A DNA stretch of 64,000 nt from Blastocladiella emersonii ATCC 22665 (GCA_025594325.1 JANHCV010000010.1:1364001-1428000), one strand, 5' to 3'; shown: positions 27,991-62,678, numbered from the stretch's first letter. The notes: a model not told the origin generated them from the sequence alone. Program-made: numbers and translations.

Positions 27991-28048
27991 TCTCAAGTTC
28001 AAAAGCGATTGATTACCATGCGAATCTCGCCAACCCCATCAGGCCGTA

Positions 28049-28634: not shown

Positions 28635-28760
28635 CGGCGAGCCGCGCGGGCAGCAGCCGCAGCCATGCTGGGCTACGCGCTGTGCCACAGCGCGCCGCTC
28701 TCAGGCGCTGGCTGGACGGGAAGAACAAGACACCAACTGTGTATGGTCGAGCTTTGCTCT

Positions 28761-30145: not shown

Positions 30146-30251
30146 TGTGCCGTGGCAGCGACCGTCGCTTGGGAGAGCGTGGACTGGCCGCGGCGCTCTC
30201 AGCTCACTTGAATCGCGTGGGACCCGTTCGTTGCTCAAAGTTCGGTTGTAT

Positions 30252-32681
30252 TCACTCATCCGCGCCCTCGAGTGTCCACATCTCTTCCTCGTCCTCCTCA
30301 TCCTCCTCCTCCTCCTCATCATCATCCTCATCCGAGCTCGACGACGCGTGGACGCCAACACCACCCAGCTTGGTCCGCCCAAGCGTGAGCCGCCCGCCCC
30401 TCGCGACGCTGCTCGGGAGCCCGCCGTCGTTATCGTACACTTCATCCTCCTCCTCCTCATCCTCCTCATCATCCCCCTCGCCACGCGCCTCCGCATCCGC
30501 CGCAGCCGCCGCATCGATCTCGTCCTCGTCGTCATCCTCGTCGTCGTCGAGCTGCATCATGACCTCCTCGTCATCCTCCTCCTCCTCGTCCGCGTACACG
30601 GTATCCCACGGCTCGGCGTCGTCGAGGATCGCGCGGAGCCCCGCGGGCGCCGCGGGCATGGCGCCCGACGCCGTCAGGTCCTGCATCATCTGCTGCACCT
30701 GGCGCATCACCGAGTCCTGGCGCGCGGCCGCCGAGTCGCCGGCGCCGCCACTTGCCGCGGCAGCAGCAGCAGCCGCAGCGGCGGCAGCGGCAGAGCGCGC
30801 GTTGCGGCGCGGGCGCGTGTTGGGCGCGCCGGGCGGCGGCGGGAAGTAGCGGTCGTCGGGGATCGCGGGGAGCGCGGCGGTGGAGTCGGCGGCGGGATCG
30901 CCTGCGGCACCGTCCTCGTCGTCGCCGCCGGCCTCGCCACCTGGAACCACGGGCGCGTTCATGATCACCTCCATGAAATCCTCGGGCGGCGGGTCGTACG
31001 GCGTGCCCGCGACGAGCGCGCTGCGCTTGCGGCGCAGGCGCGCGCGGATCTTGATGATCAGGCCGCGGTAGTACCACCCGTCGATCGGCTATCGGGACAC
31101 GCGCGCGGGGTTAGTCGAGTTCGCAACGCGGAAGGTAAAAGGCAACGTACATCGCACGCGTCGCGCAGGTACTCGGTGGTCTCGACGAGCTCCTGGAGGA
31201 TCGGGTCCTTGAGGTCGCAGAACTGGAACACGGACGTGGTGTCGTTGACGTTGACGCCGTCGAAGATGTGCGACCCGTTGCGCTGGCGCGCCGTGGTCTG
31301 GCGGTTGGACATGCCGCTAGGACCCGCGCCGCGCGACTCCGTGCCGGCAGGCGCCGCACCATCCGCATTGGCGGCGAGCGGCGGGAGCGACTTGCGTTTC
31401 GCGCGGAGCCATCCGGTCTTGAAGTGGTTCCGGGTATCGAGCGACTGGTAGAACCGCGTGTCGATGCTGGCGGCCGGGTCGAACCCGAACCGGACCCACG
31501 TCATCTTCCAGGGCCCCGAGGTCAGGTAGTAGGCGACGGACGGCAGGATGCGTTTCAGGCGGCGCACGAGGACCGGGTCGGCGAGCTCGTTGATGAGGGC
31601 GAGCCGCGTCCACACGGGCCGCACCGCGAACTTGGCGCGCACCGCGTCGATCATGTCCTGGGCCACGCCCGTCAGGTGCTTCTGGATGTCCGGGCTCGGG
31701 CCCGTCGGGACCGGGTGGTGCCCCGCGACCGAGGTCACGGGGAGACCCTTTTCCTTGGACCGGTTGAGCAGGCGGACTGAGGTCGACTAGTTGCGCGAAG
31801 GTGGGTCAGTCGTCGTCGTTGGGGGCACGGATGGTGAAAGAAAGCGTACGCCGTCGGGCTGCTGGATGGCGACCTTGACGACGGCCGGGTTCTGCTTGTA
31901 GTCGTACTGCAGCGGGAGCTCGATCTGCGAGAAGAGCGGCGGCGGGAACTGCATGAGGTCGGTCATGGACGTTTCGTCCTCGGACCCGAGCTTGAACTTG
32001 GCGAGCTCCTCGACTAGGGGGTTTCGGTGAGTGAGTGAGGTGGTCCGAATCGGTGCGAGTGGTTAGAGCGGGCCACGTACGGTCCATGGTCGTCATGGCG
32101 TGGCGGAGCTTGACAAGCGGGTCCTCGGGGTCGGCGTGCCACTGGTAGTCGGCGAGACCTGTCAGAGCGAACCGTCAGCGACTTACCAACGTGCGCACAT
32201 CCCGAAGCGAAGCGAACGCACTGCGGAACCGCCCCGTCTCATGAATCACACCGCGGACCTCGGCCATGTACACCCAGGGCTCGCCCGTCCCGCGCCGCCG
32301 CCGGCGAACGACACGCACGAGCAGGTTACACGTGCTGACGATCTCGCCGAACAGCGGGTGCGCGAACGGGTCCTCGGGGCGCCACCGCAGCTCGAGCGGA
32401 ACGCGGATCGGCGCGCCGCTGGCGTCGGGCCGGTCGGGCTGCAGCGACTTGGCAATGGCCAGCGGGCCGCCCAGCATCGTCAGGGCGCGGTCGTTGTTCT
32501 CGACGAAGCCAGGGAACTCGACCACGACGTACGGCGTCGACGGGATCCCGAAGTGCGGGCCCAGCGACAGGTACGGCGGTTCGGGTTTGGGCGTGGGCGG
32601 TTCGGGCTCGGGGTCCGGGGCCGGCGACGTGGCGGGCCCCGGCACCGGTGCTGGGTCGGTTTCCATTGGGTCGGTCTCCAT
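30252..32681 (-). CDS. TFC1: TFIIIC subunit tau95 (GTF3C5) with acidic C-terminal tail
   Basis: VVEFPGFVEN.DRAL.MLGG, LELRWRPEDPFAHP, LADYQ, FPPPLFSQIELP..Y.YKQN, FAVRPVWTR, AYYLTSGPWKMTWVRFGFDP, DGWY; four introns. Confidence 0.9.
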
Positions 32682-32933
32682 GTGTGTTGTTGATGTCAGG
32701 CAGGGGTGAGCGTGCAGAGGGGAGAGGCGAGCGACGGTGAGAACGCGTCCCGACACCCAAGTCCCCATCTAGCGTAGCGACGGGTCACGCGGGCGCACGC
32801 CACCTCATCCACGCGAGCGTGTCTCGCGCTGCCGCCGCCACCCCTCTCGAGCTGTACCCCGCCACGAAGACATAGCGATCCACACGAAGTGGCCCCGTCC
32901 ACGCACCACGTAACTCTACGCATCAACCCGAAC

Positions 32934-35920
32934 ATGGCCCCACCGAAGCGCAAGGGCGGCGCGAGCAAGCGTCCCGCCAAGGCGCCGTCGGCCGCGCAGA
33001 CCAAGGCGCAGGCCAAGAAGGCGGCCAAGAAGGGCAAGGCCCAGCACCACGCGGTGCCCGAGACCGAGGCCGACGTCGATCTGCTGAGCGACGAGGACCT
33101 CGAGTTCATCGAGCAGAACGCCCAGTTTGCGTCGCTCGTGGCTAACCTCGATGTCAAGGCGCTCACCAAGTACGTCATTTTGCGGCACGGATTGACTGAG
33201 TGGTCGCTGACCCAACCTCGCGCGTGTCTAGGAAGGAGAAGAAGGTCAAGCAGCCCGCATACGCGCGCACGACGGACGCGAACCGCATCGAGTCGTCCGA
33301 CGACGAGAGCGAGCTCGACGCGGCGCTCGAGTCGGCCGAGATCGTGGACGTGTCCGCCGACGACGATTCGGACGCCGACGGCGAGTCGCACAGCCTGTCC
33401 CGCCGCGCGCGCGCCGCCAAGGCCTCGGCCGCCGCCGCCGCTGCGCGCGACTCGGACTCGGACGACGACGAGATCCGGCAGACGATCGTCGAGGGCGAGT
33501 CGGACTCGGACGCCGGCGGCGCCTCCGGGTCGGACCTCGAATCGGACGACGACGCGAGCGACGCCGGCAGCGACGCGGGGGCGGGGCTCGACTCGGACGA
33601 AATGGACGTGGACGATATCCCGACCGACTACGAGTCGACCGACGACGAGGCCGGGCTCGACGACTCGGCGTTCCTGGCGCCGCCGCCCGCCGAGTCGCGG
33701 TACGCGGCCAAGCACCGCAAGCGCGAGACCGACGACGCCGAGGCCACCTACGAGGCCAAGCCGCGCGCCGCGCCCAAGCCCGAGAAGCCCGGCCGCCTGC
33801 CCGTCAAGCTCCAGGACGGCCGCGTCATGCGCGTCAAGGGCGAGGAGAACGAGGAGGACCTGTCGCTGAGCACCGACGACGAGGCCGAGGACGAGGAGGA
33901 GGACGAGAAGCCCGCGGCGGCCAAGCCCCAGCGCGCGGCGAGCAGGGACGCGCACGCGGACCTGGACGACGACGCGATCCACCCGCTGGAGCGGATCGGG
34001 CAGCTGTCGCAGCGGATCCTCGACAGCCCCGAGGACAACATTGCGCTGCTGACGCGGCTGCTCGAGTACGTGCAGGGCGGGCAGCGGCTCAAGCAGCTGT
34101 CGGGCCGCGGCATGGACCACCGGCAGGTGCAGAAGATTGCGCTGGCGTCGCTCGGCCAGGTGTACCTGGACATCATCCCGGGGTACCGCATCCTCGAGCT
34201 GACGGACGCGCAGAAGCAGGAGAAGGTCGGCAAGGAGGTGCGCCGCCTGCGCAACTTTGAGCAGTCGCTGCTCGTCGGGTACCAGCGGTACCTGAGCGCC
34301 CTCGACAAGCTCATCAAGAAAGTGCCGAAACGCACCGCGATCCGCGACGGCGATACCGCGTTCCTCGCCATGTCCATGCTGTGCCAGCTCCTCGTCACCC
34401 ACCCGCACTTCAACTTCCGCCTCAACATCATCAACGCGCTCGTCATGCGCCTCACGCGCCGCGAGTTTCGGGTCCCCGTCCTCGACACGCTGCGCACCGT
34501 GTTCAAGCGCGACGAGGAGGGGTCCGTGTCGTCCGAGGCGGCGCGCCTCATCGCCAAGCTCGTCAAGATGGCCGCGTACGAGGTCGACCCCGAGGTCGTG
34601 CGCGTCTTCAACCACCTGCGGCTCAAGCACGAGCTGACGCTCGAGGACCTGACCAAGAAGGGCGGCAAGGGCAGCAACGGCGGCAAGCCTGACGGCGGCA
34701 AGCTCGCCAAGCAGAAGAAGGGCAAGCGCAACAACCGCACGCAGTACGTGAACAAGAAGCAGCGCAAGAACAGCAAGCTGACCAAGGAGGTGCTCAAGGA
34801 GCTCAAGGAGGCCGAGGCGGTCGTCGACCTCGAGGACCGCAAGAAGCACCACCGCATCACACTCGAGCACGTCTTCCTGACGTACGTGCGCGTGCTCAAG
34901 ACGGCCAGCACCTCGCGTCTCGTCCCCGCGGCGCTCGAGGGGCTCGGTATCTTCGCCCACCTCATCTCGGTCGACTACTTCCAGTCGCTGTGGTCCGTGT
35001 TCAAGTCCCTCCTCGGCGACCCCGCCCTCGGCGCCGAGTCCAAACTCTCCATCATCGCCACCGCCAACCGCGTCATGTCCGGCCAGGGCGAGGTGCTGAA
35101 CCTGGACCTCGCCGACTTCTACACGTCGTGCTACCGCGTGCTCGGCGAGCTGCGCATGGTCCCGCTGCCGCACGACTCGCCGGTCCTGCGCCAGGCGCTC
35201 GACGTCCTCGAGGAGATTTTGCGCCGCAAAACGTCCCTCGCCGTCGTCGCCGGCCTGTTCGCGCGCGTCGCCTCCCTCGCCGCGTCCGTCGACGACCCCG
35301 CCGCGACCCTCGCGTGCATCTCGGTCCTCGCGGGCATCGCGTCCAAGTTTCCCGGCCTGCGCCGGCTCCTCGACCCGCCGTCCGACCGCCCGACCTCGCA
35401 GCCGCACGACCCGCACGCCGACGACCCGGTCCTCGCCAACGCCCTCGCGTCCGCGCCGTTCGAGTTCGCCCTCCTGATCGCGCACTGGCACCCGGACGTC
35501 CGCGCCGCCGCCGCGGCGGTCGCCCGCGAAATGAACCCGGCCACGGCCAAGGGACACTTCACCCGCATCCTCGGGTGGCGCGAGACCCTCGACAAGTGGG
35601 CGTGGAACCGCGGCACACGGTACGTCCCCGACTGGACGAACCCCGGCGGGAACGCTGGGCGGCGCGCGCCCGGGCAGCGGCAGCAGTACAACTACGCGGC
35701 GCGCGAAGGGTTGGCGAAACCTGGTCGCCGGCCGCGCGAGGGGGAGGAGGAGGCCCCGAAGGATGCCGCCGCCGAGGCCAAGGCTGCGGCCGTCAGCAGG
35801 GCGGCCGCCGCGCTCGTCCCGCCAAAAGCCAAGAAGCGCAAGACGCACGATTCTGCTGGTGCAGGGAAGAAGCGCGGCGGCGGGGGCGGGGGTCGCGGGC
35901 GCGGTGGCAAGCGTCGTTGA
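32934..35920 (+). CDS. NOC3: Nucleolar complex protein Noc3
   Basis: RLPVKLQDG, SLGQVYLDIIPGYRI, LRNFEQSLL..YQRYL, HPHFNFRLNII, YVRVLK, ALEGLGIFAHLISVDYF; intron 33170-33231. Confidence 0.92.
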
Positions 35921-35982
35921 GTGAGACTGACCCGAGGTTTTGGTAATAAATACACAGCTAGCTTACTCACTCATCAATGTAT

Positions 35983-38010
35983 TCAGACAATGCTCCGGTT
36001 ACGCGGCATCTTGGCCGGGTCCGTCGCGTTGCCGCCCGGCTGGTGGCGCTTCTTGGCCTTCGCCGCTGGAACAGGTGCCGCGGCAACACGCGGCGCGGCC
36101 GAGTCGACGAGCGACCGCCGCCTCGCCCGTGCCGCCATCGCGTCGCGCAACCGCCTGTAATTCCGGTCGAGCGCAAACTCGATGACACACCGGTTCTTGA
36201 TGAGCGAGATGAGCGGCCACGTCGACCGCATCCCCTTGCGCACCCAGTAGTCCATGGCGGCCGCCGTCGGGTTCGCGAACAGCGACCGGTAGTCGTCGAG
36301 CGACAGGTCGGGCGTGATGGTCACGTCGCCCGTGATCGTCGGCGGCGCGACCCACTGCGCGACGAGCGGCGGGATCAACCCGAGGTACGCCGCTTGCGCG
36401 GTCCGGTGGCGGACTTCCATGAGCACGGCTGACAAAACGCGTGCGAGGAACGAGTGCCGCTTGCGCCACCCGCGGAGCACCATGGGCGCGGCGAGGGCCC
36501 CCGCCTGCGACACGATCAGGTGGTTCACGTTGAACAGCTCGACGAGGCGGTGGTGCGGCGACGACTCGGACGACGGGTCTGGCGGCGGGACGACTGCGGG
36601 CGCCGGGACGGACGTGGTGCGGGTGGTCGAGGCAGCGGCGGGCGTCGGTGTGACGCGGCCGAGGAGCGGACTCGTACCGGCGGCGGCCGCCCCCTCGCCC
36701 GCGGTGCCCGTGCGGCGGCGCAGGGGCGGGGGCGGGGTGGCGGCGCCGTCGGCGGCAGACCACGCGACGTCGCGGTCGTTGGGCGACCACTTGGAGATGC
36801 GCCCGTCGTTGTCCTTGGCGTAGAGGTAGTTGTGCTCGTAGAGCGGGTACGTCGCGGCGGTCGAGACGCACGCGGCGGACCAGATGAGCACGTTGGGCGC
36901 GGTGAGGTAGTTGAGGACCTGCGGGGTATCGTGGGGCCGGTCGGCGGCGACGGTGATGTTGAGGATGCGGTGGGTCTTCTTGAATGCCTCCTCGAAGGTC
37001 AGGTCGCCGACGTTGCTGCGGACGCAGTTTTCGAGGACCTTGATGTTGAGCGCGTGGCCCGTCTTGAACCACCGCACGAGCTTGCGGCGCAGGTTGCCCT
37101 GGGCGCCGACCTGGTCGAACGCCGAGAGGTCGATGCCGCCGGTGCGGAAGACTACCTCGAGCTCAGCGTCCGTGTGGATGCACACGAGCGCAGCGATCAG
37201 GGCGCCCACGGCGCTCCCCGAGATCACGTTCGGCAGCATCTTCTGCTCGTGCAGCGCGCGGACCACGCCCATGTGGTACAGCCCGAACGTCGCGCCGCCC
37301 TCGAGGATCAGCGCTGAGCACCCAAACGACTGCTTGGTCTCGTGGAAAAAGTCGAGGCGCATGGGCGGCGGCAGGTCCGGGTGGTCGGTCGACGCGAGCT
37401 GGTCGAGGATGCTGACGACCTCGCGCGTGTACTCCTGGATGAGCCGCTTGGTGCCGATATACGAGGTGCAGTAGAGGCGCGGGTCCGAGATCCCGCCGAG
37501 GTTGCGCAGCAGGCCGCTGCGCAGCGAGTAGATCATGTTGATGACGTCGCCCGCGCGCCGGTCGCTGCGCAGCTTGGCGAGCCGGTAGTGGATCAGCTTG
37601 TGGTCGTAGTCGGCCGACACGGGCGACTCCTTCCACCGGTCGTTGCCCAGCACCCGGTCCAGCTGCTGCGCCGTCGCCTTCCACTCGTCGTACGACGTCG
37701 CGTGCGCCAAAGCGTCGCGCAGCGCGTCGATGTTGTACCGCGCCGAGGGGGTGGTGCGTGGCGCCACGGCGGTTGTAGTGGGCGGCGGCTGTCGCGTGCG
37801 CCGCCGCCCCGTCCCCGTCGCGGCGGCGAGCCACGCGAGGACCGTGGCGACGACGGAGGTCACGACGGCTTGCAGGTAGTGCGCGAGGCCGGCCGGGCGC
37901 GATACATTAGCATCCATTCGAGGTGCGGGTCGGTCGAACGCCTCGGGCAGCCGCGGCGGTTTCACGACCACCGAAAACGCGTCGCGCCAGCCCACGTGGC
38001 CGAGTGACAT
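35983..38010 (-). CDS. Patatin-domain TAG lipase-like protein (Tgl3/Tgl4 family) with degenerate catalytic motif
   Basis: SYDEWKATAQQLD..WK..S.DYD, LRSGLLRNLGGI, GGATFGLYHMGVV, ISGSAVG (Ala at the nucleophile position), LTFEEAFKKT.RILNI, LNYLTAPNVLIWSA, ELFNVNHLIVSQ; intronless. Confidence 0.85.
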   Translation of the reverse strand: MSLGHVGWRDAFSVVVKPPRLPEAFDRPAPRMDANVSRPAGLAHYLQAVVTSVVATVLAWLAAATGTGRRRTRQPPPTTTAVAPRTTPSARYNIDALRDALAHATSYDEWKATAQQLDRVLGNDRWKESPVSADYDHKLIHYRLAKLRSDRRAGDVINMIYSLRSGLLRNLGGISDPRLYCTSYIGTKRLIQEYTREVVSILDQLASTDHPDLPPPMRLDFFHETKQSFGCSALILEGGATFGLYHMGVVRALHEQKMLPNVISGSAVGALIAALVCIHTDAELEVVFRTGGIDLSAFDQVGAQGNLRRKLVRWFKTGHALNIKVLENCVRSNVGDLTFEEAFKKTHRILNITVAADRPHDTPQVLNYLTAPNVLIWSAACVSTAATYPLYEHNYLYAKDNDGRISKWSPNDRDVAWSAADGAATPPPPLRRRTGTAGEGAAAAGTSPLLGRVTPTPAAASTTRTTSVPAPAVVPPPDPSSESSPHHRLVELFNVNHLIVSQAGALAAPMVLRGWRKRHSFLARVLSAVLMEVRHRTAQAAYLGLIPPLVAQWVAPPTITGDVTITPDLSLDDYRSLFANPTAAAMDYWVRKGMRSTWPLISLIKNRCVIEFALDRNYRRLRDAMAARARRRSLVDSAAPRVAAAPVPAAKAKKRHQPGGNATDPAKMPRNRSIV

Positions 38011-38325
38011 CACTTCCCCGAGAGGGACCGGATGTTTTATCACTCCCGCCCCGGAGAATAATACGCGGGTCCGGGGTTCCTGCTCGATAATCAGGAGGGC
38101 GGGAAGGAGGAGATTCCGGGGCCCGGGGTTGGCGGGACTGACATCATCGTGGGGCCTAGCGCGGCGACGCCAAGTCGGGCCGAGTTGAGCGGCGCCCCGC
38201 CGACGCCCTCTCCCTCTCGCCGCCGATCCCTCTTCCCTCTCGAGGTGCCGGCTCTGGCCTCTTCCCCCCTACTGCAACGTATCAACGCCACGCGCCACCA
38301 CGCATCAACTCATCCGAGATCAACC

Positions 38326-39357
38326 ATGGGGATCCGCCTCGCCCCGCTCAACGTGCCGATGCACCGGCGCCGGCAGACGCTGGGCGTGCTGATCTGGCTC
38401 TTGCTCGTCCCGCTCTCCCTCGCCATCTTCGTCTTCTCGCTGTACTGGACGTACACGCGCGCGTTCGCGCTCGCCTACATGACGTGGGTGCTGTTCTGGG
38501 ACCGGGCCGCCGAGACGGGCGGGCGGCGGTCGACGCTGGTGCGCCGGTTACCCGTGTGGACGTGGATGCGCGACTTCTTCCCCGCGGTGCTGATCAAGGA
38601 GGCCGACCTCGACGCCGACCGCAACTACGTCTTCGGGTACCACCCGCACGGCGTCATCTCGCTCGGCGCGTGGATCAATTTCGCGACCGAGGCCAACGGG
38701 TTCTCGGGCCTGTTCCCCGGCATCCACCTGCGCCTCCTCACGCTCTCGTCCAACTTCAACCTGCCCATCTTCCGCGAGATCATCATGTGGCTGTCCATCG
38801 CCTCCGTGTCGCGCAAGTCGTGCGAGACGATCCTGGGCAAGGGCCCGGGGCACTCGGTCTGCATCGTCGTCGGCGGCGCCCAGGAGTCCCTGTACGCGCG
38901 GCCCGGCACGCTCGACCTGGTCCTGAACAAGCGTCTGGGTTTCGTCAAGGTAGCGATCCGCAACGGCGCCTCGCTCGTCCCCGTGCTCTCGATCGGTGAG
39001 AACGACGTGTTCGACCTGGTCCCGACCCGCAAGGGCACCCTCCCCTACACGCTGCAGCAGCTGTGCAAGAACAACCTCGGGTGGACCGTCCCGCTCTTCT
39101 CGGGCCGCGGCATCTTCAACTACTCGATGGGCGTCCTCCCGCACCGCCGCCGTATCGCCACCGTCGTGTGCAAGCCCGTCCACCCCGACGAGGTCATGGG
39201 CCACCCGATCAACGTCGCGGCGCTCACCCCCGAGGAGCTCGACGCGGTGACGCGTAAGGTCCACGCCGCGTACGTCGAGTCGCTCCTGGCCGCGTGGGAA
39301 AAGTACAAGGACGAGTACGCGCCAGACCGCATCAAGGAGCTCGAGCTCGTCGAGTGA
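38326..39357 (+). CDS. DGA1: Diacylglycerol O-acyltransferase type 2
   Basis: LAPLNVPMHRRRQT, FGYHPHG, IVVGGAQESL, RLGFVKVA..GASLVPV..GENDVF; intronless. Confidence 0.95.
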   Translation: MGIRLAPLNVPMHRRRQTLGVLIWLLLVPLSLAIFVFSLYWTYTRAFALAYMTWVLFWDRAAETGGRRSTLVRRLPVWTWMRDFFPAVLIKEADLDADRNYVFGYHPHGVISLGAWINFATEANGFSGLFPGIHLRLLTLSSNFNLPIFREIIMWLSIASVSRKSCETILGKGPGHSVCIVVGGAQESLYARPGTLDLVLNKRLGFVKVAIRNGASLVPVLSIGENDVFDLVPTRKGTLPYTLQQLCKNNLGWTVPLFSGRGIFNYSMGVLPHRRRIATVVCKPVHPDEVMGHPINVAALTPEELDAVTRKVHAAYVESLLAAWEKYKDEYAPDRIKELELVE

Positions 39358-39445
39358 TCGAAATGAAGAAGTAGCACAGCACACTTTTGCAGCATCGTAT
39401 ATACATTCTACCCCTTCCATGTCCACTACTCTACACCCGTCTAGT

Positions 39446-41822
39446 CTAGTGCTCGCCGTGCTCGCCGCCGCCGCTCCCGCCGTGCGGCATGTAGTACACC
39501 GTCTCGCCGCCGCCGTGTTGCTGATGCGCACCAGGCGCCGAAGCAAGGAGCCACTGCATCGCCGCCGCCTGCTGATGCTGCTGCTGCTGCATGAGCATCG
39601 CCGCGTACTGCTGCTGCACCGCCACCGCCGCCATCTGCCCGTGGTGGTGGTGGAACTGCTGCTGCGGCGCCCGCGGAAGCGGGACCACGGGCGACCCCCA
39701 CGCCGACGTGTGCGGGACCGGGTGCCCGTGCCCGTGGCTGTGATGGTGGTGGTGGTGAGCCCGCGGGACCGCGGGGACCGGGGCCGCGCGACGCTGGACC
39801 AGCACTGGAGCGGGCTCGACGACGATCACGCCCGAGTCGCTGCCGAGCGCCGCGGACGCGGGCACCGACCGCGCGCGTTTGTGGTGGATGTGGTGGTGGT
39901 GGTCGGGTCCGCTGGCGAGGAGCGCGGCCGCGGTCGGCGCGGAAGGGGCGGCGGAGGTCGACTTTTTACGTTTCCGTGGCGAGGAGGCGGGCGTGGTCGA
40001 GGTCTACACCCGCAAAAGTGAGTGGTTTGCGCGCGGCCATGGGTGAGCGGGAGGAGAACGTACCGATGCTTCGCCCTCGAACCCCTCGATCGCGAGCTGC
40101 CCCGCGGGCGCGGGCGACTCGGCCGCGGCGCTGCTGCTCGCCGCGCGCTTGTGGTTGTGGATACAGTCGGCGCACGACGCGACGCGGCCCTCGAGCTTGT
40201 CGCGGCGCCGCCGGTTGCAGAACCAGTCTATACACACGCGCACACGCGTCGTCAGCCACGAACCACACCCTCGTCCCGCGCCGCGAAACGTACACTCGAC
40301 CTGCACCGGCCGGAGCTCGGCCGCCTGCGCGATCTCGGTGCGCCGCGCCGAGTTGAGGTGGATGCACAGAAAGTAGTACGAGTACAGCAGCGTCGTGACG
40401 CGCGGCGCGAACGCGCCCGTCGGCGTCTGCGCCTGCCCCTGCCCCGCTGCCCCCGCCGCCGCCGCCGCAGCGGCAGCCGCAGCGAGCTGCTGCTGCGCCA
40501 GGTGCGCCGGAACCTGCCCGCCCGCCGCCTGGATCAGCGTCGCCAGCGCCGCCGGATCGATCTGGATCGTCGCCATGGTCCCCGCGCCGTCCACTGGGTA
40601 GCTGAACTGCGCGACGCCCGGCGCCAGCGGGGCGGCGGTGGTGGTGTTGGGGGAGGTGGTGCGGATCTGCGGGTTCGGGCCTAGCAGCGCCGCCGCGAGC
40701 GACGCCATCGGCACCGCGTGCAGCACCGGCTGCGCCGCGCGCGTGGCGGGCTCGAGCGGGGTCGGCGTCGAGACAGCGGCCGACGCGGCGGCAGCGGCCG
40801 CGGCGGCGGCAGCGGAGGCTTTCTTCGACTTGGCCGACGTCGTCGACGACCGGCGCCGCTTCGCCTTGGATGCTGCCGGAGCGGGCTTGGCGGCGACAGC
40901 AGGCGCGGGGACGGACTCGGCGGCGACGACGGGTTCAGCGACGGACGGCACGGGCGTGGGGTCCTCGGTGTACTTGACGAGCGCGCGCTCGCCGACCGCG
41001 GCCGCGGGCTGATGCTTCGACTGCTGCGCCTCCTCGGTGCCCCCCTGGAACAGGCAGCTGTAAGGGAGCGGCCCATCCTCGATGTACTCGTCGTGCTTGC
41101 CGCTGCCGCTCCCAAGCCGCGCGTCGTTGTCGTGGAGCACGGGCGATAGCGGGTCGACGGCCATAGGCGACGCCGCGTGGTGGTGGTGCTCGGCCGTCGC
41201 GTCGCCGTACCCGACAGCGAGGTACGCGGGCCGCGCCATCGGCGACGACGCGCCGAGCCGCAGGCCCGCGGGCGGCGACCCCGCGTACGCCGCCAGGTCG
41301 TCGTGCGGGTGAATCTGCAGCCGCGCGGGCGACAGCGCCGGGCTGCGGAACTCGCCGAACCGCGGCGACGGCGAGCGCGCACCCGCAGGCGAGTCCTGCG
41401 GCAGCAGCGTCGTCGGGTACGTGAGCGGCGACGAGGCAGGGCCGGGGCAGGGCGCGGCGGCCTCGGTCTGGTGGAAGAGCTGCGACATCGACAGCGGGTC
41501 GTGGAAGCCGGCGAAACCGGGGTCTAGCAGCAGGTCCGACGCCGACGAGGACGGGAACGGGTCGCTGTCGCTGGCCGTCCGCGGCGCCGAATGTTGCTCG
41601 GGCTGCGGCTCGACGCTCGGCGACTGCGTCGCGCGGTGGAACCCCGAGTCGGCCGTGTCGGTCGATGCCGAGCGCTGCTCGGGATCTGGAGGCGACGAAG
41701 ACCGCCAAGTCAGCGAGCGGGACCGCGTGCGGAGCTCGATTGATCGCGACAGGCGTACCGTAGCCGAGCATCGCCTGATCCGCCGCGATACACCCGGCAC
41801 CGCCGCCGTGTGAATGATCCAT
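39446..41822 (-). CDS. Homeobox transcription factor with an atypical Cys50 homeodomain and His/Gln-rich tail
   Basis: Spliced exons 41822-41759, 41685-40294, 40227-40064, 40003-39446 give F8..L16..R31..I34A..L40..QVEYWFCNRRRR, then the NLS-like PRKRKK. Confidence 0.8.
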
Positions 41823-42759
41823 GTTGGTGTGGTGTGTGATCGAGAAAAAGTGCGGTAGCCGGATCCGCCAGGGATCAAACTATAGCACGAGTTTGGTGTG
41901 TGGGGAGCAGCAGAACAGCCGCTGCTGCGCTGCGGGAGAGGCCAGGAGTCGGCCCCGCGAGCGCAGTGCGGCCAGTCAGTGCGGGATGCAATGTCTCCAT
42001 TGTTTAGTTGTCTCCGCCACAGCCGTTCGCTTTTGCGTGTGAGAGCGAATTCGAGCCGTGCGTCTCGCACGCGACGCGAGGCGTTTCACCGCCCAAGAAA
42101 CGCTCACGTGACGGATGAGAGACGCGTTTTGGACGCGTCGCGCTGCTGCTGCTTGCTTGCAAGGTAACGCGCATCGCCGAAAAAGCCACCGCTACAATCT
42201 TTATCGCGCGCCAGCTGACCTTCTGCAGTCGCTTGTGGGAGGGTCAGGTCAGCAGAGCATAGAACGAGAGGCCGCCAGGCGAGGCGCACCTCGCCGACCT
42301 TCTCCCTCGCCCCGCCCCTCCGACGTTAGCCCAATGTAAATCTTTTATACATCGACCAAACGAAATTGATGTCTATGTAATGCGCCCTATGAGGCGAACT
42401 GAATGTGACGGCCGCGATGGCCGCGACGTGATCCGCCGCGCTCAGCCTGAGGCTCAGGCTCTGGTCAGGCGACTCGCCGCTCGGGAGCACGATGAGCGGG
42501 ACTTGTGGCACCATGGGCATGATTTCATCGGCGCTTATGATGCTTATGACGGGGATGGGAGAGAGTGAGAAGCTTGTACGAGAGCGCTTGCGACACACGA
42601 GCGGGGGGTCAAGCTCACACGCGGCGCTGGCCATTTGATGGGGGCACGACCGCGACACGCGCTGCATTCACAACGCACTCAAGTCGACACAACCAACGTA
42701 AATGCAAGACTGCAATGTATACGAAAACAAAAAGCACGAATGGAGGCCGTGCGAGGCGG

Positions 42760-54133: not shown

Positions 54134-55641
54134 ATGGCAATCTCGATGCCATGGATCAAACGCGGCGTGTGCGCTCCCACACCGCGTCGCATCCCCGCGG
54201 GGAGCCCGGACCACCTCTCGCTCGCTCGGCTGGCCGGTTACGAGCGTGTGGTACTCGGAAGACCTCGGCTCACTAACGATACGGACAAGTACTACGCCGT
54301 TGCACTCCAAGTTGGAGCTGAGACCCCTGGTACGACCATGGCCGTGGCGGCAGCTTTGGGCGACCACACTCAATCTCGCGGTGTCACAGAACACGCTTAT
54401 TCCGGTTCAAAACTGCTGGTTGCACGAGCTCCTGCACCGGCGGCAGTCGACGCGCCCGAAGAGGACGACTTGGTGCCTGAAATCGCCCCCGAGGACAGCG
54501 TGCTCGTGCTTGGGCCCCGAGTCGGCCTGCGGGGCGCGCAGATGCAGTTCCACCTTCTCCAGCAGCAGCACCACGATGCGTCCGCACGCGGCGTGGCTCC
54601 TCCCGGCGCTTCCATCGAGTACATGTTGCGTCAGCACCACCGCGCGTGGCTCCCGGCGCCGCCTACAGCGCTCGAGTGGCTCTACCACGTTCCCGGTACA
54701 CACATGGCTCGGCAGCCGCTGTTCAACCCGCCCATTGGTACCACGGGCAATTTCATGGCCATGGCGGGTCAGTCGTGCTACATTGAGCCGTGGAACGTCA
54801 ACGTGGTCGGGCCAATGCTCCCCGTGGCGTACCTCGGCGGCTCGCGGGTCATGGACGCCTCGGGTAGATCTATCAGCGTTCGCGAGTACGGGCCGCCCAA
54901 CGGCGAGTTCCATGTCATGCCCGTAACGGTTCTGGCGTGGCACCCGGACCAGCCCAACCTGCTCGCGTTCGGGTCCAGCGACGGGACCGTCAAGGTCTGG
55001 AACCTCGACACGCTCCGCGCTGTGACCTCGTTTGTCCCGCATTCACACACGGGCCCGCCACAGTCGTTGACGGGCCGCCATCACCAGGTCACGCTGGTCA
55101 AGTGGTCGCCGACCGCGCCGACGTGCCTGCTCACGGGCGGCACTGACTCGCGGTCGCCGGCCGCACCTATGTCGGCGTGGCGCTTCGATCTGATGAGGGA
55201 CAACTCGGATTTTTCTGCCGTACCCACGTCCGCCGCGTTGCGCCGCTCGACCTCCACGTTTATGTTGCAACCAGCAGTGGGCGCATCGTGGTCCTCGACT
55301 TGCGCAACACCGCGGAGCCCGTGCAGTCGCTGGCCGCGCACGGCAACGGCGATGATGACGAAGCGACGTGCATCTCGCTCTCGCCGTCGGGTTCCACGCT
55401 CGCGTCAGTCAGCTGCAGCACGACGGCCAAGCTGTGGAGCGTGGACCCGGCCACCGCCAAGCTTACGCTTAGTTCGGTACATGACCCAGGTCTCGAGATG
55501 CTGTCCACTTGCTCGTGGTGCCCTGACCACGACGGTCTGCTAGCCGTGGGCAGTCACGGAGGATCGGCCGTGCTCGATCTCAGAACCGGCGCAGTCTTTC
55601 CGACTGCCACCCTCGGCGCTGACTATCCCACTCCGGTTTGA
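54134..55641 (+). pseudogene. Divergent intronless PWP1-like WD40 gene with a frameshift
   Basis: N-terminal PWIKRGVCAPTP, HH..LPAPPTALEWL, TGNFMAM..IEPWNVNVV..LPV..LGG, DSRSP..WRF, CSWCPD all follow PWP1 motif order; frame change near 55238. Confidence 0.6.
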
Positions 55642-55984
55642 CGCGCAACAGGACGTTTTTTGGCACGGTTGTCCGCACGAATCCGCCCACAGAGCCAGTT
55701 CAACGCGACAAGCCGGCTCGAGCGGACCGCAGAGCCTCGGCAGTCACTGTCTTGCTCACCCTCCACTCTTCGTGTTCCCTCATAAATTGAAATCTCTGCG
55801 AGGCCATGGACGCGTTGCGCCAGCCGATGAGGCGTTTCATTTGAGCGTGAGTGGCGCAGTCCGCGGTGCAGGTGCAGCTGCATGCATCCCACTGCGGCCG
55901 ATCGACGGCCGCGCACACTTGCCGCCGTCTCGTTCCTCGCTCTCGCTGAATGTAAACCACACCCAGACTTAATGCATCTACCCC

Positions 55985-58041
55985 ATGGCGCCTGATCCCA
56001 GCAGTAACGGAACTCGCGGCGCCGCGCCCGCGACTCGCGGACCTCGCGGCCGCCGCAGCGGAGCCAAGAAGCCGCGCGCCAAGAAGCCGGCCGCGTCGAG
56101 CTCGAACACGGCGTCATCTTCGTCTTCGGCTGCTGCTGTCCGCGCTACTCAGCAGTTGATGTCCCCGGCTCGCAGGTACGCGAGTACTGCGGCGCGATCT
56201 AACGGGCAGCTTGACTGACTTGCGCGAACATCCAGCAGGGAAGAAGTCTTCGACGAAGTGACGGACCAGCTGCGCCAGTCCGACTACGGCCTCAGCCTGC
56301 TCGTCGACCATGCGCGTAAGGTGATGGAGGCGCGGGCGAACGGTGCCGACTCGGACGAGGACGACGAGGCGATCGTGCCGCCGTCGCAGGAGCTCAAGGA
56401 CATGGCGTCCATGCTCTTCGCCACCAACCCCGAGATGTACGACTCGATGCGCAAGATGGGTCTCCCGCTCCCCGCGCCACGGGCCGAGTGGGCGGCGCCC
56501 GGCGGCAGCGGCGGTCGTAGCTCGGCGGCGTCGGGCGCATCGAGCGGGTTCCCCGCGGGCTTCTCGGACCTGCACCTCGAGAAGGCCGTCGCAGCCATCG
56601 GCGGCACGCAGAACCTCCACACGCCCAAGGCCTCGGTCAGCATCGCGGTCGGCGAGATCAAGGTGACGCCGCTCCTCGAGTTCACGGCATCGGGCGAGGA
56701 GAAGATTACGGGGTACGAGGAGGGCGACTCGGGCGACGAGGAGGCGCCGGGCCTCGCGAGCCGCGCCGTCGTCTTCCACATGTGGTGCCACGAGACCCGC
56801 GTCGCGCACCCGCTGTGCTTCTACATGTACAACTCGGTCCGCCCGCACCTCGTCGCCGGACGCATCAACAAGGTCGTCAGCAAGCTCCAGCGCAAGGGGT
56901 TCACGGTCGTGTCGTGGTTCTCGGACTGGTGCGTTCCTCGAGAGTGTGACCCTGTCCTCATCGACTTGATGCTGACTTCCTCGATGCATGCAGCAACTCT
57001 ACGTACCACGAGATCAACGAGCTCGTGTCGACCAACCCGTCTATCAACTGGATCCCGGACCCCGTGAGCGTCCTCAAGGGCCTGCGCGACGCGCTGGCCG
57101 ACCCGAACCTGACCCTCGACATGCACACGGGCGGCGTCGCCAGCATCCACTGCGTCGCCAACCTGGTCGCCATCATCAAGCGCGAGCCGCGCCTCGCCAA
57201 GCTCTACAACATCACGCCCGAGTACATCCAGCTCAAAACCGACGGCTGCCTGATGCTGAACACGACGCTCACGGACCTGACTCCGCACACGGCCAACGCG
57301 CTCCGCCTCATGTTCATCGTGCCCCTCGACAAGATCCTCGCGAGCGGCGGCTCGCTCACCGCGTCGACGCGCGCGCAGCTGCAGGACGCCCTGGCGTCGG
57401 TCAAGTCGACCCTCTTCTACATGTCGGCCATGATCAAGTACCGCGCGGCGTTCCTGAGCCGCGAGCGTATCGCGAACCTCAACCACTCGGTGCTCACGGA
57501 GCTCGACGACGTCGCCGAGTACTTTGTCGCGTGGCAGAAGCACCTCGACGCGCGCGCCACGCGGACCACGGGCTCAGCGGCGGCGCGCGAGGCGTTCAAG
57601 GCCAAGTCGTTCATCCCGATGACCACGTACTCTGCGCTGCTCGACTCCATGGACGGGTTCAAGCTCGCGGCGCGCCGCCTGGTGCAGACGGACGTCAAGC
57701 CCGTGGTGCCCGTTGCGTTCGGCAACAAGTTCGTCAACGACTTTCTCGCCGAGGTGCGCGCCGCCGGCGTGCCGCGCGTCCAGGCTAAGCACATCATCGC
57801 CCAGGCCCTCAAGACGCACCAGCAGAACGCGATGCTAATGCGCGCCACGGCCAACATGCGCCGCACGCCCGAGTACTACGACGGGCCCGACGACGACGGG
57901 GAGACGTGGCGGGCGCCCGCCGAGCTCGTGTTCGGCTCCGACAACCGCGACGAGGGGCTTGACGAGAATGGCGAGGGGATCGACCAGGACGGGTTCCTCC
58001 ACTACGACTTTTTTGGCCACGCGGCCGAGCACGGGCACTGA
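55985..58041 (+). CDS. D1: protein derived from a P-element transposase (THAP-less), catalytic residues degenerate
   Basis: Spliced with introns 56176-56238 and 56929-56993. SIAVGEIKV..LEF, AVVFHMW..HPLCFY, VVSKLQRKGFTVVSWFSD, PDPVSVLKGLRD, LYNITPEYI, FGNKFVNDFL.EVRAAG are collinear with P transposase AFDEMKV..FEY, KQPVFF, LRKLHRKGYLVVAIVSD, SDTPHLIKLVRN, LFKINENHI, LNQDIVEHFFGSMRSRG. Confidence 0.8.
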
Positions 58042-58242
58042 TGGGTGAAGCGGCTTGTCGGATTTTTGTCTTAATCACACTGCGCTTTTGCTTATGATAC
58101 GCTCGTCGAACCGAGAGTCGCGACCGACCGACCGACAACGCGCCGTGTTTCATTCCAACGTGACTGGCGCAGCGCCTTGCTGAGCACCGCGCGTCGGCCT
58201 TCCCACGCTCTCTCACGGCAAACGAACGGAGAATTGAACTTA

Positions 58243-58257
58243 GGGCCCGTTTGGTTC
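58243..58257 (+). repeat. Left terminal inverted repeat of the PIF element
   Basis: GGGCCCGTTTGGTTC preceded by TTA. Confidence 0.95.
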
Positions 58258-58376
58258 CGGGGTGAATCAGGTGGATCAATCGATTTTACACGGTCCGGTG
58301 TTCACCCAGCTGAAACGTGGCATTTTCACCCCGTCGCGTTCATCGCGGCGTTTGGGTCGACCCCCGGATGAGCTGA

Positions 58377-58841
58377 ATGGAACCCTCGTCGCTGAATTGC
58401 CCGTCTGCTCGCCCCCGAAACCTTCAGGCTGTGCTTCCCGGCCTATATAAACGCTGTTTTCCTTCGTGGGGCGGCTCGACCACCACCGGCGAGTACTCGC
58501 ACCTCGAGCAGGACGGCAAGGAGTCTGGTGACGTGGAAGGTGTCGATGGTCAAGACGACGCGGCCCCCGCCAGCAAGCGCAGCCGCACTTCGGACAGCAG
58601 CTCGCGTCGCCTCTCGGACTCGGAATTCCTCATGGGCATCAAGGAGGTGTTCCAGAGCGTCGCGACCGCCGACTCCAAGCCCGTCCTGACCGCCGCACTT
58701 GAATGGGTCCAGGACGCGTACAACGACAATGAAGAGTACCAGATCGACGTCGCCACCCGCCTGACCGAGGATCAAGCGCTTCGCGTCATGGCCGTGTCCG
58801 AATCGAAGCGCAAGCGCATCCTCGAGATTTTCATTCAGTAG
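58377..58841 (+). pseudogene. Probable 5'-truncated PIF ORF1 (Myb/SANT partner) remnant
   Basis: 154-aa frame inside the TIRs with an acidic/basic linker and a helical C-terminus; no Myb domain visible; assignment rests on position. Confidence 0.45.
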
Positions 58842-59154
58842 CTCACTCGCACATGTCCCCCTCCCCTCGCGTTGCTTCCTGGCCTTGTTCTCGCCCATTT
58901 GTGTCCAATACATCTGGCTTTGTGTCCATCGTATCTTCAATCGTTACCCTTCGCTCGAAAATGACGCGACTCGTTGAGAAACGCGTGGTTCGCAAAGTGT
59001 CTCACACGTCACGTGATTGATCGACGCGTCCCCACCGATGCGTTCTGACCTCAGCGACGCGTCAAATCATCTAGAATCGCTTATATAACATTATAGTACT
59101 TGACAAATCAGTATATTACAGCATGCATGCGGGTACAACAATTATTTCGCGCCT

Positions 59155-60472
59155 TCAAAGACGGGTCCCACGAGCGGCCATGACGCGCCTGTACTCGGTC
59201 CAAAGAACATTTGCGACGCGGTTCCGAAGCGAGATACCGCGCTGACGAGCTCCGTCCAGCGAGGCCTCGAGGACAGCGGCCTCGTCGTCCTCCTCGTTCT
59301 CGTCGTCCAGGGGCTCGCGCCCACGTACTGGCGCCTCACGCGCCGCGTCCCGCGCGCGCCGGAGCTCCGTCTCGGCGTCGCGAAAGAAGGCGTCGCCGCC
59401 TTGGTTCCACTTGTTGATCATGTTGTGCAGCGTGCAGAGCGCGTACACAAGCTTGACTTGAGTCTTGATTGGGTAGGCCGCGCCAATCGAGAGGACGCGG
59501 AACCGCTTCTTGAGCACGCCAAAGATATGCTCAATGGAGTTGCGGAGCGACGCGTGACGCAGATTGAAAAGCTCTTCGCGGTTCTTAACTCTACGTACGT
59601 TGGTGAAGCAGATGAGATGGCGCCAACGTGATGGTCATGGCAGTGAGAACGTACCCATCCTTGCCGCGGGCAAACTCGCGAAGATGATAGCGGGTACCGC
59701 GGAAGGGCACGATGATGGACGTGCGGTTTGCGTAGCCGCCGTTGGCGAGGTAGAAGCGGCCGGCGGGGATCTTGAACCCACGGGCGAAGGCGTCCGAGAG
59801 CACGCGCGAGTCATGCGCCTTGCCCTCCCACCCTGCGAGAACGTAGGTGAAGTTCAAGTCAAAGTCGCAGGCAGCGAGGACATTTGAGTATATGGTCCCC
59901 TTGCGGTTTCGGAACGAGTCGTGAAGCTTAGTGGGCACAACAAACGGGATGTGCGTTCCGTCAAGCGCGCCGACCGCGTTCTGGAACGGAGCGTATTTCG
60001 GGTCGTGGGCGATGCGCTCATGCACGGGCGTAGAATCGGACGGCTGGACAATGAACTCGGGCATCAGGCGGTACAGAGCGTCGAGCACTTGCTTCAGAAC
60101 CCTGGACGCGGTCTCGCCAGAGATTTGGAACCGCTCCCTGAGGTTGCGGTTGGTGCTGCCCTCGCCGGCCATGACAAGAAAAACCATGAAGCGCGCCTCG
60201 ACGGACAGCTCGCGGCCGTCGGCGAGAAGGCCACGGTCGCGGAACAGGCGGCAGATGGCCTTGAAGGTCTCGCGGGGCATACGGGCGATTTCCGAAAAAC
60301 GCGTTTCGCTGTTGCACGTCAGCAGCTCTTGAACCCACGACTCGCCAGAAAGCGTGGACGTGCGGATAGGCTCCCACGAGCGGCGCTCGTTGCGCGCAGC
60401 GAGACGTCGCAGGAGAGCGAGGGCGGCCGTGAGTATGAGGCCGCGCAGCTTGCGGTTGTATCCCTTGCCCAT
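59155..60472 (-). CDS. PIF/Harbinger DDE transposase with one intron; second catalytic Asp changed to Asn
   Basis: RMPRETF, VGALDGTHI, RNRKG..SNVLAACDFDLNFTYVLAGWEG.AHDSRVL, YLANGGY (canonical YLxDxGY), FNLRHASLRNSIEHIFGVLKKRF, CTLHN; intron 59591-59654. Confidence 0.9.
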
Positions 60473-60679
60473 GTTGTTTGAGGGCTCGAGAACACGATGC
60501 GTGAGGTTAGGTGTTGATTCGTTGCAATAAGTGCGGCTGCAAAGAGGTGGGAAAGATTTTATTGCGGGGGGGGGGGGGGGAGGGGCGTTCATCCAGCGGG
60601 GCGTTTGGTTCGCACGGCCGCTGAGATGAACGGGGGTGAGGTGAAACGTGGCAACTTTTTCAGCTGATCCACCTGATCT

Positions 60680-60694
60680 GAACCAAACGGGCCC
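60680..60694 (-). repeat. Right terminal inverted repeat of the PIF element
   Basis: GAACCAAACGGGCCC followed by TTA. Confidence 0.95.
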
Positions 60695-60700
60695 TTAACC

Positions 60701-62678
60701 ATGATGACTACAAGTGCTAGCAACGGCGGTCCCCGTGGCACCGCTCCAGTCGCGCGCGGGCCGCGCGGCCGTCGCAGCGCCGCCAAGAAGCCGCGCGGCA
60801 AGAAGCAGACCTCGTCGGGCGCGAGCGAGGCGACGGCGCCCGCGCAGGGAGAGTCGTCGTCTTCTAGCAGGTGCGCGGTGGAGCAACATCATGGTGGGTC
60901 TGCGGACCGCGTCGACTCACGACGCGCTCGACGACCCAGTATGCACAAGCAGCGCTCCGATGGCGCCAACCACAAGAAAAACGACCCAATCAAGGGCACC
61001 ACTCGGCCGCAGGAGGCCACCTACGAGACGCCCTTCGCCTTCAAGCCCAACCCCGGGTTCGTGCGCGAGATGATGCGCCTGTACCGCAAGAAGACGCCGC
61101 CGCCGCCCAAGCCGAAGCCGAAGCCATCATCTGCACCCGACGACGACGAGTCTAGCAGCTCGACGGATTCCGCGTCCGACTTCCCCGCCGGGTTCTCCAA
61201 CATCCACCTTGACCTCGCCGTCGCGGCCATTGGCGGCGCCAGCAGCCTCAACACGCCCAAGGCCTCGGTCAGCATCGCCATCACCGAGATCAAGATCGCG
61301 CCCGCCAGCACCACGGCGACCAACGAGGGCGGCGACGACGACTCGCCTGGCCCCAAGCGCCGCGCCATCGTGTTCATGATGTGGTGCCACGCGACGCGGC
61401 TCGCGCACCCGCTTTGTTTCTTCACGTACAACTCGATCGACCCGCAGTCCATGGCCGGCCGCATCAACAAGGTGTTCGCCGAGCTCGAGGACAAGGGGTT
61501 CGAGGTGCTGTCGTGGTCCTCGGACTGGTACGCGCTCAACTGCGCCATACCGCTCGCACACCGCTAACGTCGATCCCCTCTGTAGTTCTGACGCGTACCA
61601 CAAGATTGCCGAGCTCGTGTCCGCGGCCAACTCCTCCATCAGCTGGCTCCCCGACCCGCTCTCCGTCACAAAGCGCCTGTGCGACGCCCTCTCCGACCGC
61701 GACCTTGCGCTCCAGGTGCGCGAGGGTATCCCCATCGACCTCGACTGCGTCTCCAACATTGCCGCGTTCATCAAGGGCGAGCCGTGCCTCACCAAGCATT
61801 TCAACGTGTGCGACGGGTCAACCGCCCACGGCTTCATCTCCTCCAAGACCGACTTTGTTGCACGCATCGAAGTGGCTATCCAGAGCGTAAACTCGCACAC
61901 GACGTGCCAGATGCGCACGGTGCTCATCGACGCCATCCTCGCGATTGGGACCGACCCCGCGCTTGACGCGCCGACGCGAACGCGCCTGCGCGACGCGGTG
62001 GACCCGGTCAAGGCGACGCTCACCTACATGCTGGCCGTGCGCGGGTACTGGGAGAGGTTTGTCGGCTGCCGCGACCGCATCGCCAACCTCAACCACTCGG
62101 TGATGACCGAGCTCGAGCAGATCGCGAACTATTTCATCGAGTGGGAGAAGATGGTCGACGACCGCGTCGCGCAGGCCGACGGGACCGCGGCCGCGCGCGC
62201 CGCTCTCAAGGCCAAGTTCTTCATCCCCGCGACCACGTACACGGTGCTGGTCGAGTCGATCGCCTCGTTCAAGTCGGTCGCGCGCCGGCTGCTCCAGACC
62301 GGTGTCTCGCCCGTGGTCCCGGTTGAGGTTTGCGACACGTTCATGAACCAGTTCCTCAAGGACTTGCACGCTGCCACCGCGCCTGCGCCCGTGCCGCAGA
62401 TCAAGCACATCCAGGACACGGCCGTCAAGATGCACCGGTTCAACGCGGCGCTGCTGCGCGACGCGGCCAAGAAGAACAGCGTGCCCAAGCACTACGACGG
62501 ACCGGCCCCGCTCCAGTTCCTTGTCGCGGCGAGCACGCCCGCCGAGCTCTGGTTCGGGCGCAAGTACGAGAACGACTCGGACGGCGGCGGGACTCGCGGC
62601 AAGCAGGGCGGGTCCAGCTCGAACCAGGAGGACGTGCGGCGTGTCTTTGGTACCGCCCGCAGTAACCTCCTCAGCTAG
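60701..62678 (+). CDS. D2: tandem paralog of D1, derived from a P-element transposase
   Basis: Same basic N-terminus RGPRGRRS.AKKPR; SIAITEIKI, AIVFMMW..HPLCFF, ELEDKGFEVLSWSSD, PDPLSVTKRLCD, VCDTFMNQFL; introns 60871-60939 (in-frame, uncertain) and 61528-61585 (same position as in D1). Confidence 0.8.

Follow-up and report, generated by a model that had tools for sequence, protein, structure and literature searches.

Two neighbouring genes, here called D1 and D2, were analysed in a 64,000-nt stretch (the window) of GC-rich eukaryotic DNA from the zoosporic fungus Blastocladiella emersonii ATCC 22665 (GCA_025594325.1). Both lie on the same strand and encode proteins that resemble the transposase of the Drosophila P element, with most of its signature active-site residues apparently replaced. 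Our results show that D1 and D2 belong to a real, probably domesticated family of P-derived genes. An earlier note, made from the sequence of this DNA, had described a tandem pair; the two genes are indeed neighbouring paralogs, but they are split by a 2.45-kb PIF/Harbinger element and are part of a family that occupies four loci.

The B. emersonii family comprises five D-type genes (D1, D2 and the paralogs X, P3 and P2), two remnants, and a divergent pair (P0006 and P0007). D1 and D2 share 46% identity at the protein level and 72–78% in DNA blocks, and each is a three-exon gene with a full-length open frame (Table 1). Their introns carry the signals GT(A/G)CG...CTRAC...AG. The position of D1 intron 1 is common to X, P3 and P2, and intron 2 has an identical phase, right after the codons for the residues SD (TG/GT at the splice junction), in D1, D2, X, P3, P2, P0006 and P0007. 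The first exon encodes a basic N-terminus, RGPRGRR...KKPRxKK, that is conserved across all five D-type paralogs. The open frames, the normal introns (one of them shared after SD) and an N-terminus resembling a nuclear localisation signal (NLS), all described in the earlier note, were thus recovered in our gene models.

A 26-nt sequence, GTTTCAYNYNARCGTGASTGGCGCAG, precedes these genes and is a putative promoter element of the family. In the sequences examined, exact matches were confined to the 5' flanks of D1, D2, X and the remnant beside X (0 expected in shuffled sequences), at 99–151 nt from the start codon when D2 is considered in its state before the Harbinger insertion. Public gene annotation for B. 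emersonii is ab initio (PMC9730499), and several of its models are corrected by our analysis. Model KAI9168557.1 (812 aa) joins D1 to an upstream WD40/PWP1-like open reading frame (ORF; window 54134–56175), H9P43_002456 (964 aa; 5473–9152 of the second locus, L001) joins X to a RIB43A gene, and H9P43_007932 (our P0001), which is 100% identical to D2 exon 3, begins D2 at an internal Met. The two fusions are probably annotation artefacts, because neither takes in the basic exon, the upstream motif or the conserved start.

Resemblance to the P transposase and state of the active site

Profile searches matched the Pfam family TNP-like_RNaseH_N (PF21787) to D1 (31.5 bits) and D2 (26.2 bits) above its gathering score of 24.6, and independently to four further paralogs (P0006, 35.2 bits; P3, P0007 and X, 20–23 bits). 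AlphaFold gave the D1 model an overall predicted local distance difference test (pLDDT) score of 62 and the D2 model one of 70, and the cores of the models scored 80–95. The best Foldseek match of the D1 model was the P transposase structure 6PE2_A (E 1e-10), and the clusters retrieved from the AlphaFold database contained P-transposase-like and THAP9 entries, including Q7M3K2 (E 4e-12). In the ESM Atlas, the nearest clusters with a Pfam family were all TNP-like (scores 0.95 and 0.91). With VIA-align, the D1 model matched the strand-transfer complex of the Drosophila P transposase at Z 20.6 (model residues 56–549 on 6PE2_A 138–566) and the D2 model at Z 21.4, with a root-mean-square deviation of 4.7 Å over 327 residues (model residues 81–488 on 6P5A_A 201–569). 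The next-best folds (Transib, ISCth4 and integrases) reached a Z of only ~10. In both models, the match extends over the helix-turn-helix (HTH) region, the split RNase H fold and the helices of the insertion domain, in line with the earlier by-eye view that the RNase H core and the insertion are collinear with those of the P transposase; the structural comparison proposed at that time thus returned the P transposase far above other folds. Taken together, the profile, language-model and predicted-fold evidence strongly supports the descent of D1 and D2 from a transposase of the P superfamily (P element/THAP9-type).

The THAP zinc finger had been reported missing by the earlier note, and our Pfam scan agrees, with no match to this domain in exon 1 or in the whole D1 and D2 proteins. 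THAP domains are reported to be absent from fungi (PMC7776569).

In the fly enzyme, mutation of D230, D303, E531 or the D(2)H-motif residue D339 lowers or abolishes activity (PMC7776569, PMC8230255). In both models, the equivalent positions (Table 1) agree with what the fold demands and fall on beta1, beta4 and alpha4: the first is in beta1, the second closes beta4, the D(2)H motif opens the helix that follows, and the last is in the helix beyond the insertion domain. Across the five D-type genes, the first Asp is replaced by G/T/S/S/T, the His of the D(2)H motif by S/S/C/S/S (X carries DPAC), and the Glu by N/N/N/K/N (Lys in P3). The outgroup pair P0006/P0007 retains VDD, TD/SD and DPRH/DPVH. 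A canonical P-like element, now decayed, occurs in an unrelated assembly of eukaryotic DNA and carries FDELKI, DVPHLTK and NDLENYF, which align with GEIKV/TEIKI, DPVSVLK and FVNDF of the D-type proteins. The register of the D1 and D2 residues is supported because the motifs of both the outgroup pair and the canonical element line up with them. That D1 and D2 lack three of the four residues that mark the active site, and keep only the D303 equivalent, is strongly supported. The GTP-binding residues of the fly enzyme are K385, K400, V401, S409, F443, D444, N447 and D528 (PMC7776569), and the motif alignment places a non-acidic residue at the D528 equivalent, three residues before the Glu position, in both D1 and D2.

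These replacements had been read by eye in the earlier note (G or T for D230, N for E531, Ser for the D(2)H His, D303 kept), and the family alignment and the models lead to the same assignment. Its further proposal, that catalysis was lost before duplication, is also borne out by the alignment: the losses predate the D1/D2 duplication because all five D-type genes share them and the outgroup keeps the first Asp and DPxH. This puts them on the stem of the D-type clade, although the genes differ in what replaces the first Asp (G, T, S, S, T).

The phylogeny groups D1 with X (support 99/99) and D2 with P2 (89/97), and D1 has the shortest branch in the tree. At the second locus, a unit made of a D1-type gene followed ~200–300 bp downstream by a D2-type gene, each with its upstream motif, recurs. 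This unit is older than the split of the two loci, because the tree pairs D1 with X and D2 with P2. Spliced at the conserved sites, P2 contains in-frame stops that the public annotation masks as non-homologous introns, and it is likely a pseudogene.

Table 1 Features of the D1/D2 locus and of related loci (positions refer to the window unless another locus is named).
Feature	Position	Strand	Description
Upstream motif of D1	55834–55859	+	GTTTCAYNYNARCGTGASTGGCGCAG, 26 nt; 151 nt before the D1 ATG; putative family promoter element
D1	55985–58041	+	3 exons, 643 aa, no internal stop
D1 exon 1	55985–56175	+	Basic N-terminus, RGPRGRR (56036–56056) and KKPRAKK; AT-hook/NLS-like
D1 intron 1	56176–56235	+	60 nt, GTACGC...CTGAC...CAG; splices out an in-frame stop at 56216
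D1 exon 2	56236–56928	+	HTH-like helices and N-terminal half of RNase H fold
D230 equivalent in D1	56651–56653	+	G203
D303 equivalent in D1	56924–56926	+	D294 (retained)
D1 intron 2	56929–56993	+	65 nt, phase 2, directly after the SD codons
D1 exon 3	56994–58041	+	All-helical insertion domain and C-terminal RNase H helix
D(2)H motif in D1	57058–57069	+	D317-P-V-S320 (His to Ser)
E531 equivalent in D1	57736–57738	+	N543
Upstream motif of D2	58147–58172	+	99 nt before the D2 ATG prior to the Harbinger insertion
PIF/Harbinger element	58243–60694 (58240–60697 with TTA target-site duplication)		2.45 kb; 15-bp perfect terminal inverted repeats, GGGCCCGTTTGGTTC
Harbinger transposase	59155–60592	-	Pfam DDE_Tnp_4
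D2	60701–62678	+	3 exons, 616 aa, no internal stop
D2 exon 1	60701–60870	+	Basic N-terminus, RGPRGRR (60755–60775)
D2 intron 1	60871–60939	+	69 nt, in frame, GTGCGC...CTCAC...CAG; predicted by homology to the paralogs' intron
D2 exon 2	60940–61527	+	N-terminal half of RNase H fold
D230 equivalent in D2	61283–61285	+	T172
D303 equivalent in D2	61523–61525	+	D252 (retained)
D2 intron 2	61528–61585	+	58 nt; position and phase as D1 intron 2
D2 exon 3	61586–62678	+	Insertion domain and E531 equivalent
D(2)H motif in D2	61653–61664	+	D276-P-L-S279 (DPLS; His to Ser)
E531 equivalent in D2	62346–62348	+	N507
Second locus	L001		X (D1-type), then remnant, then P3, then P2
Remnant beside X	L001 9492–9663		Upstream motif and ATGATG start fused out of frame to the last ~50 codons; ~1.6 kb deletion
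P2 (H9P43_002454)	L001 12332–14447		D2-type; two in-frame stops when spliced at conserved sites
Third-locus copy (H9P43_007258)	L003 7734–9180		P3-like, large internal deletion; variant upstream motif at 7608–7633
Fourth-locus divergent tandem pair, P0006/P0007 (H9P43_000371, H9P43_000370)	L002 8001–11400		Between ordinary host genes; one with an in-frame stop; intron after SD/TD
Decayed canonical P-like element	L004 5300–6450		ENA ERZ25067906, unrelated eukaryotic assembly; sole non-Blastocladiella match of the family profile

Mobility, selection and alternative explanations

D1 and D2 are not a mobile element: they lack THAP, terminal inverted repeats (TIRs) and target-site duplications (TSDs), and are present at single-copy depth. 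The search for TIRs and TSDs at the boundaries of D1, D2 and the pair gave no inverted repeat above shuffled controls, in agreement with the earlier note. Three DNA runs made from the sample behind the assembly showed baseline word depth and no variants for both genes, rather than the depth of many TIR-bearing copies. Short read joints between D1 and D2 (sides of 22–23 nt) were dismissed as cross-matches between the paralogs.

The element between the two genes gave a different picture in these runs. Its word depth was 50–150 times that of its flanks, with many different flanking sequences, so the Harbinger family (~100 copies in the genome) is abundant and was probably active recently. A run of ~16 G lies just within its right end (60567–60582). 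The element sits 3 nt upstream of the D2 ATG, and before its insertion D1 and D2 were ~204 bp apart. This recent insertion probably cut D2 off from its promoter and left its frame intact.

Evidence on selection is mixed but favours the retention of D1 and D2 as genes. Codon models that take the extreme GC content of third codon positions (0.90–0.92) into account gave an omega of 0.20–0.22 (GY94) or 0.44 (MG94), and omega = 1 was rejected (2dlnL = 364). The value of omega is model-dependent, since four-fold sites are not saturated (72% identical vs. 43% by chance). All indel blocks between gene pairs are in frame (9–18 per pair; P 1e-5 to 1e-9). Between D1 and X, there are 16 gap blocks in ~340 nt of flank vs. 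11 in ~1900 coding nt, the latter all in frame. Four full-length copies are open at 25–43% nucleotide divergence, and in neutral simulations the D1 frame stayed open in 0.8% of lineages at the D1–X distance (P 0.008 per lineage). The GC content of third codon positions (GC3) is 0.90–0.95 in D1 and D2, as in core-looking ORFs (window 42000–64000 compared with 27000–42000). The two genes stand out from their immediate neighbours, given that the adjacent Harbinger, WD40 paralog and leucine-rich repeat (LRR) ORFs reach only 0.65–0.79. The introns of D1 and D2 are compositionally ordinary, while a GC3 of ~0.9 is maintained in the exons. The codons had previously been described as host-like and GC3-rich, and this comparison agrees. 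Together with the conserved upstream motif, this core-like GC3 is an indirect sign that the genes may be transcribed and translated.

Several results weigh against a domesticated, catalytically dead family. With regard to descent, exon 3 of either gene had no Pfam match at E values up to 1–10, including to PF21788 and PF21789, the profiles for the insertion domain that binds GTP and for the C-terminal part of RNase H, and the sole sequence link for this region is a weak profile match to the P-like fragment P0008 (E 2.8e-4) at NDLENYF. The family profiles and P0006 alone, searched against Protein Data Bank (PDB) sequences, also did not match the P transposase. Folds were therefore compared, and the link to the P transposase runs via Pfam, language-model features and fold. 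An exhaustive HMMER profile search of 1.84 billion representative proteins matched only B. emersonii proteins and one P-like fragment, and word-indexed searches added annotated fusions only. With regard to the active site, the first Asp was placed by aligning motifs and by structural offsets, with an uncertainty of one residue that was resolved at the motif level only: offsets to human immunodeficiency virus (HIV) integrase put G203/T172 opposite D64, and those to prototype foamy virus (PFV) integrase fall one residue away. DNA binding and oligomerisation by the retained HTH and RNase H body, in turn, are suggested by the models and by likeness to the fly enzyme. The remaining points concern retention. 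D2 now lies 2.45 kb from its own upstream motif, and all D2-type copies are compromised (D2 by the Harbinger element, P2 by two stops, and the partner of X by the deletion that left a remnant). Counting methods (NG86 and LWL85) gave a ratio of nonsynonymous to synonymous rates (dN/dS) of 0.8–1.0, and the 5' flank of D1 and X is 77% similar, equal to the coding DNA. Since the flank is as similar as the coding sequence, amino-acid change appears to be fast and constraint weak or patchy.

It is possible, on this account, that D1 and D2 are functionless relics, in which an old dead P-like element was copied by tandem and segmental duplication and is decaying slowly, its frames having no host function. 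The near-neutral counting estimates, the conserved flank and the lineage restriction of the family would fit such decay, as would the two stops of P2, the copy reduced to its start and C-terminus, and the other copy with an internal deletion. In addition, a Harbinger element at -3 of D2 is tolerated, and the pair lies within a lower-GC block with transposable-element and paralog debris. Nonetheless, we consider relics unlikely. The four copies that remain open despite their divergence would each be expected by chance with a simulated probability of at most 0.008 per lineage, the indels are all in frame, the codon-model omega is significantly below 1, and GC3 is held at 0.9 beside compositionally ordinary introns. 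The 26-nt upstream motif is also kept between D1-type and D2-type genes where the other flanking sequence has diverged. We judged the counting-method dN/dS to be misleading at a GC3 of ~0.9. The co-option proposed in the earlier note is indirectly supported by open frames, in-frame indels, an omega of 0.2–0.44, core-like GC3, single-copy depth, the lack of TIRs and the conserved upstream motif; a counting dN/dS near 1 and an equally conserved flank speak against it.

Less probable still is that the proteins are not dead and act as a nuclease or recombinase with a non-canonical site, built from an invariant Glu (E204/E173), the retained Asp and the Asn. Such a site would be DDN-like, as in SETMAR, for which a working triad of this kind is reported (PMC8230255). 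The Glu is invariant in all D-type copies, the whole body of RNase H and insertion domain is retained, and, by the PFV integrase offsets, the residue that faces the first catalytic Asp is this Glu and not G/T. In the FDELKI motif of the decayed element, in contrast, the Asp falls opposite G/T/S and the Glu opposite the invariant Glu, and the HIV integrase offsets agree with this register. Furthermore, P3 carries Lys at the third position, and no D-type copy has the His of the D(2)H motif (mutation of the motif Asp lowers excision by P transposase; PMC8230255). The Asp that contacts GTP in the fly enzyme, three residues ahead of the Glu (D528; PMC7776569), also appears from the motif alignment to be lost. 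We hold an active non-canonical site to be improbable.

The least credible account, and a very improbable one, is that a composite element is still mobile, that the D-type genes serve it in an accessory or regulatory capacity, and that catalysis is supplied in trans by, e.g., P0006-type copies. In its favour, the pair unit occurs with ~340 bp of 5' flank at two loci, and P0006 still has D, D and DPRH together with an acidic residue at the third position. Against it, TIRs and TSDs were not found at any homology boundary, depth is single-copy, and the copies are 25–45% diverged with none young. P0006 and P0007 themselves are short and have ordinary host genes on either side, and one of them carries an in-frame stop.

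Proposed role of the D-type proteins

With moderate confidence, we favour the reading that a disarmed P-transposase scaffold has been kept as a small, fast-evolving, Blastocladiella-specific family of host genes that are putative regulators or repressors. In the D-type ancestor, the transposase body would have remained whole (HTH-like helices, split RNase H fold, helical insertion domain), and three residues of the active site would have been lost: the first Asp, the His of the D(2)H motif, and the Glu. This ancestor would have had neither a THAP finger nor terminal repeats, and may have borne a conserved basic, AT-hook/NLS-like exon in place of THAP. The family would then have grown by tandem and segmental duplication under birth-and-death evolution.

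The RGPRGRR...KKPRxKK exon suggests nuclear localisation and minor-groove or other contact with DNA. The retained HTH and RNase H body may permit DNA binding and oligomerisation without cleavage. We infer that D-type proteins could be nuclear, bound to DNA through the transposase scaffold, and probably dimers or higher oligomers like the P transposase; they may act in regulation or repression, with transposons or their own promoters as possible targets. Among the copies, D1 is the best candidate for a working gene, because it combines the shortest branch with an intact promoter region. The pair as such may not be required, given that the other D2-type copies are dead.

A more specific version, which we put forward tentatively and regard as unlikely, is that the D-type proteins form a genome-surveillance or regulatory system. 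In this version, fast-evolving paralogs of the D1 and D2 types would come together on DNA by means of the retained scaffold and the AT-hook-like exon. Their targets would be the ends of transposons or the conserved motif upstream of their own genes, and their effect would be to repress transposition or to control stage-specific genes. If true, this would represent an independent fungal counterpart of the P-repressor/P-neogene solution of flies. What a transposase scaffold can do without cutting DNA is a testable question here, since B. emersonii is being developed as a model for cell biology.

Comparison with known systems

D1 and D2 are similar to the Drosophila P transposase (6P5A/6PE2) in their HTH, split RNase H and helical insertion domain (Z 20.6–21.4 over 327–373 residues), in the order and spacing of their motifs, and in the PF21787 match. 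They differ from it in having 12–14% identity, no THAP domain, and replaced equivalents of D230, the D(2)H His and E531. They also lack the 31-bp TIRs and 8-bp TSD of the P element, contain spliceosomal introns at family-specific positions, and have a GTP-binding domain and RNaseH_C part that were not detected by Pfam.

The P-neogenes of the Drosophila obscura and montium groups are stationary, P-derived genes without terminal repeats, sometimes arranged in tandem clusters, and are thought to act as DNA-binding, repressor-like proteins. The THAP domain is present in them and the C-terminal catalytic part is missing, similar to the 66-kDa repressor. The fungal D genes, in contrast, keep the whole catalytic body with mutated residues and have another N-terminus. 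Vertebrate THAP9 resembles D1 and D2 as a single-copy host gene that derives from a P-type transposase and has no flanking repeats. THAP9 keeps D304/D374/E613 and still excises DNA (PMC8230255), whereas the D-type proteins are predicted to lack the catalytic triad.

P-derived host genes are thus known from flies and vertebrates (PMC7776569, PMC8230255). In fungi, P transposons have been reported, as rare copies, only from Allomyces (Blastocladiomycota, the same phylum as Blastocladiella) and from Pucciniales (PMC5751038), which agrees with the rarity stated in the earlier note. Against a simple picture, P elements have a precedent in Blastocladiomycota, i.e., in Allomyces (PMC5751038). These transposons belong to the same superfamily as D1 and D2, and no domesticated, catalysis-dead family has been described there (PMC5751038). 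Our literature search found no description of a domesticated, P-derived family in fungi, and the D1/D2 family would be the first domesticated, catalytically dead P-derived case to be reported in a fungus. Its architecture is unusual, with a full but apparently dead catalytic body, no THAP domain, and tandem units of paralogs. Compared with the P-derived genes of flies and vertebrates, it represents a lineage-specific family with a DNA-binding/NLS module different from THAP, and it would offer a natural experiment on a transposase scaffold unable to cut DNA.

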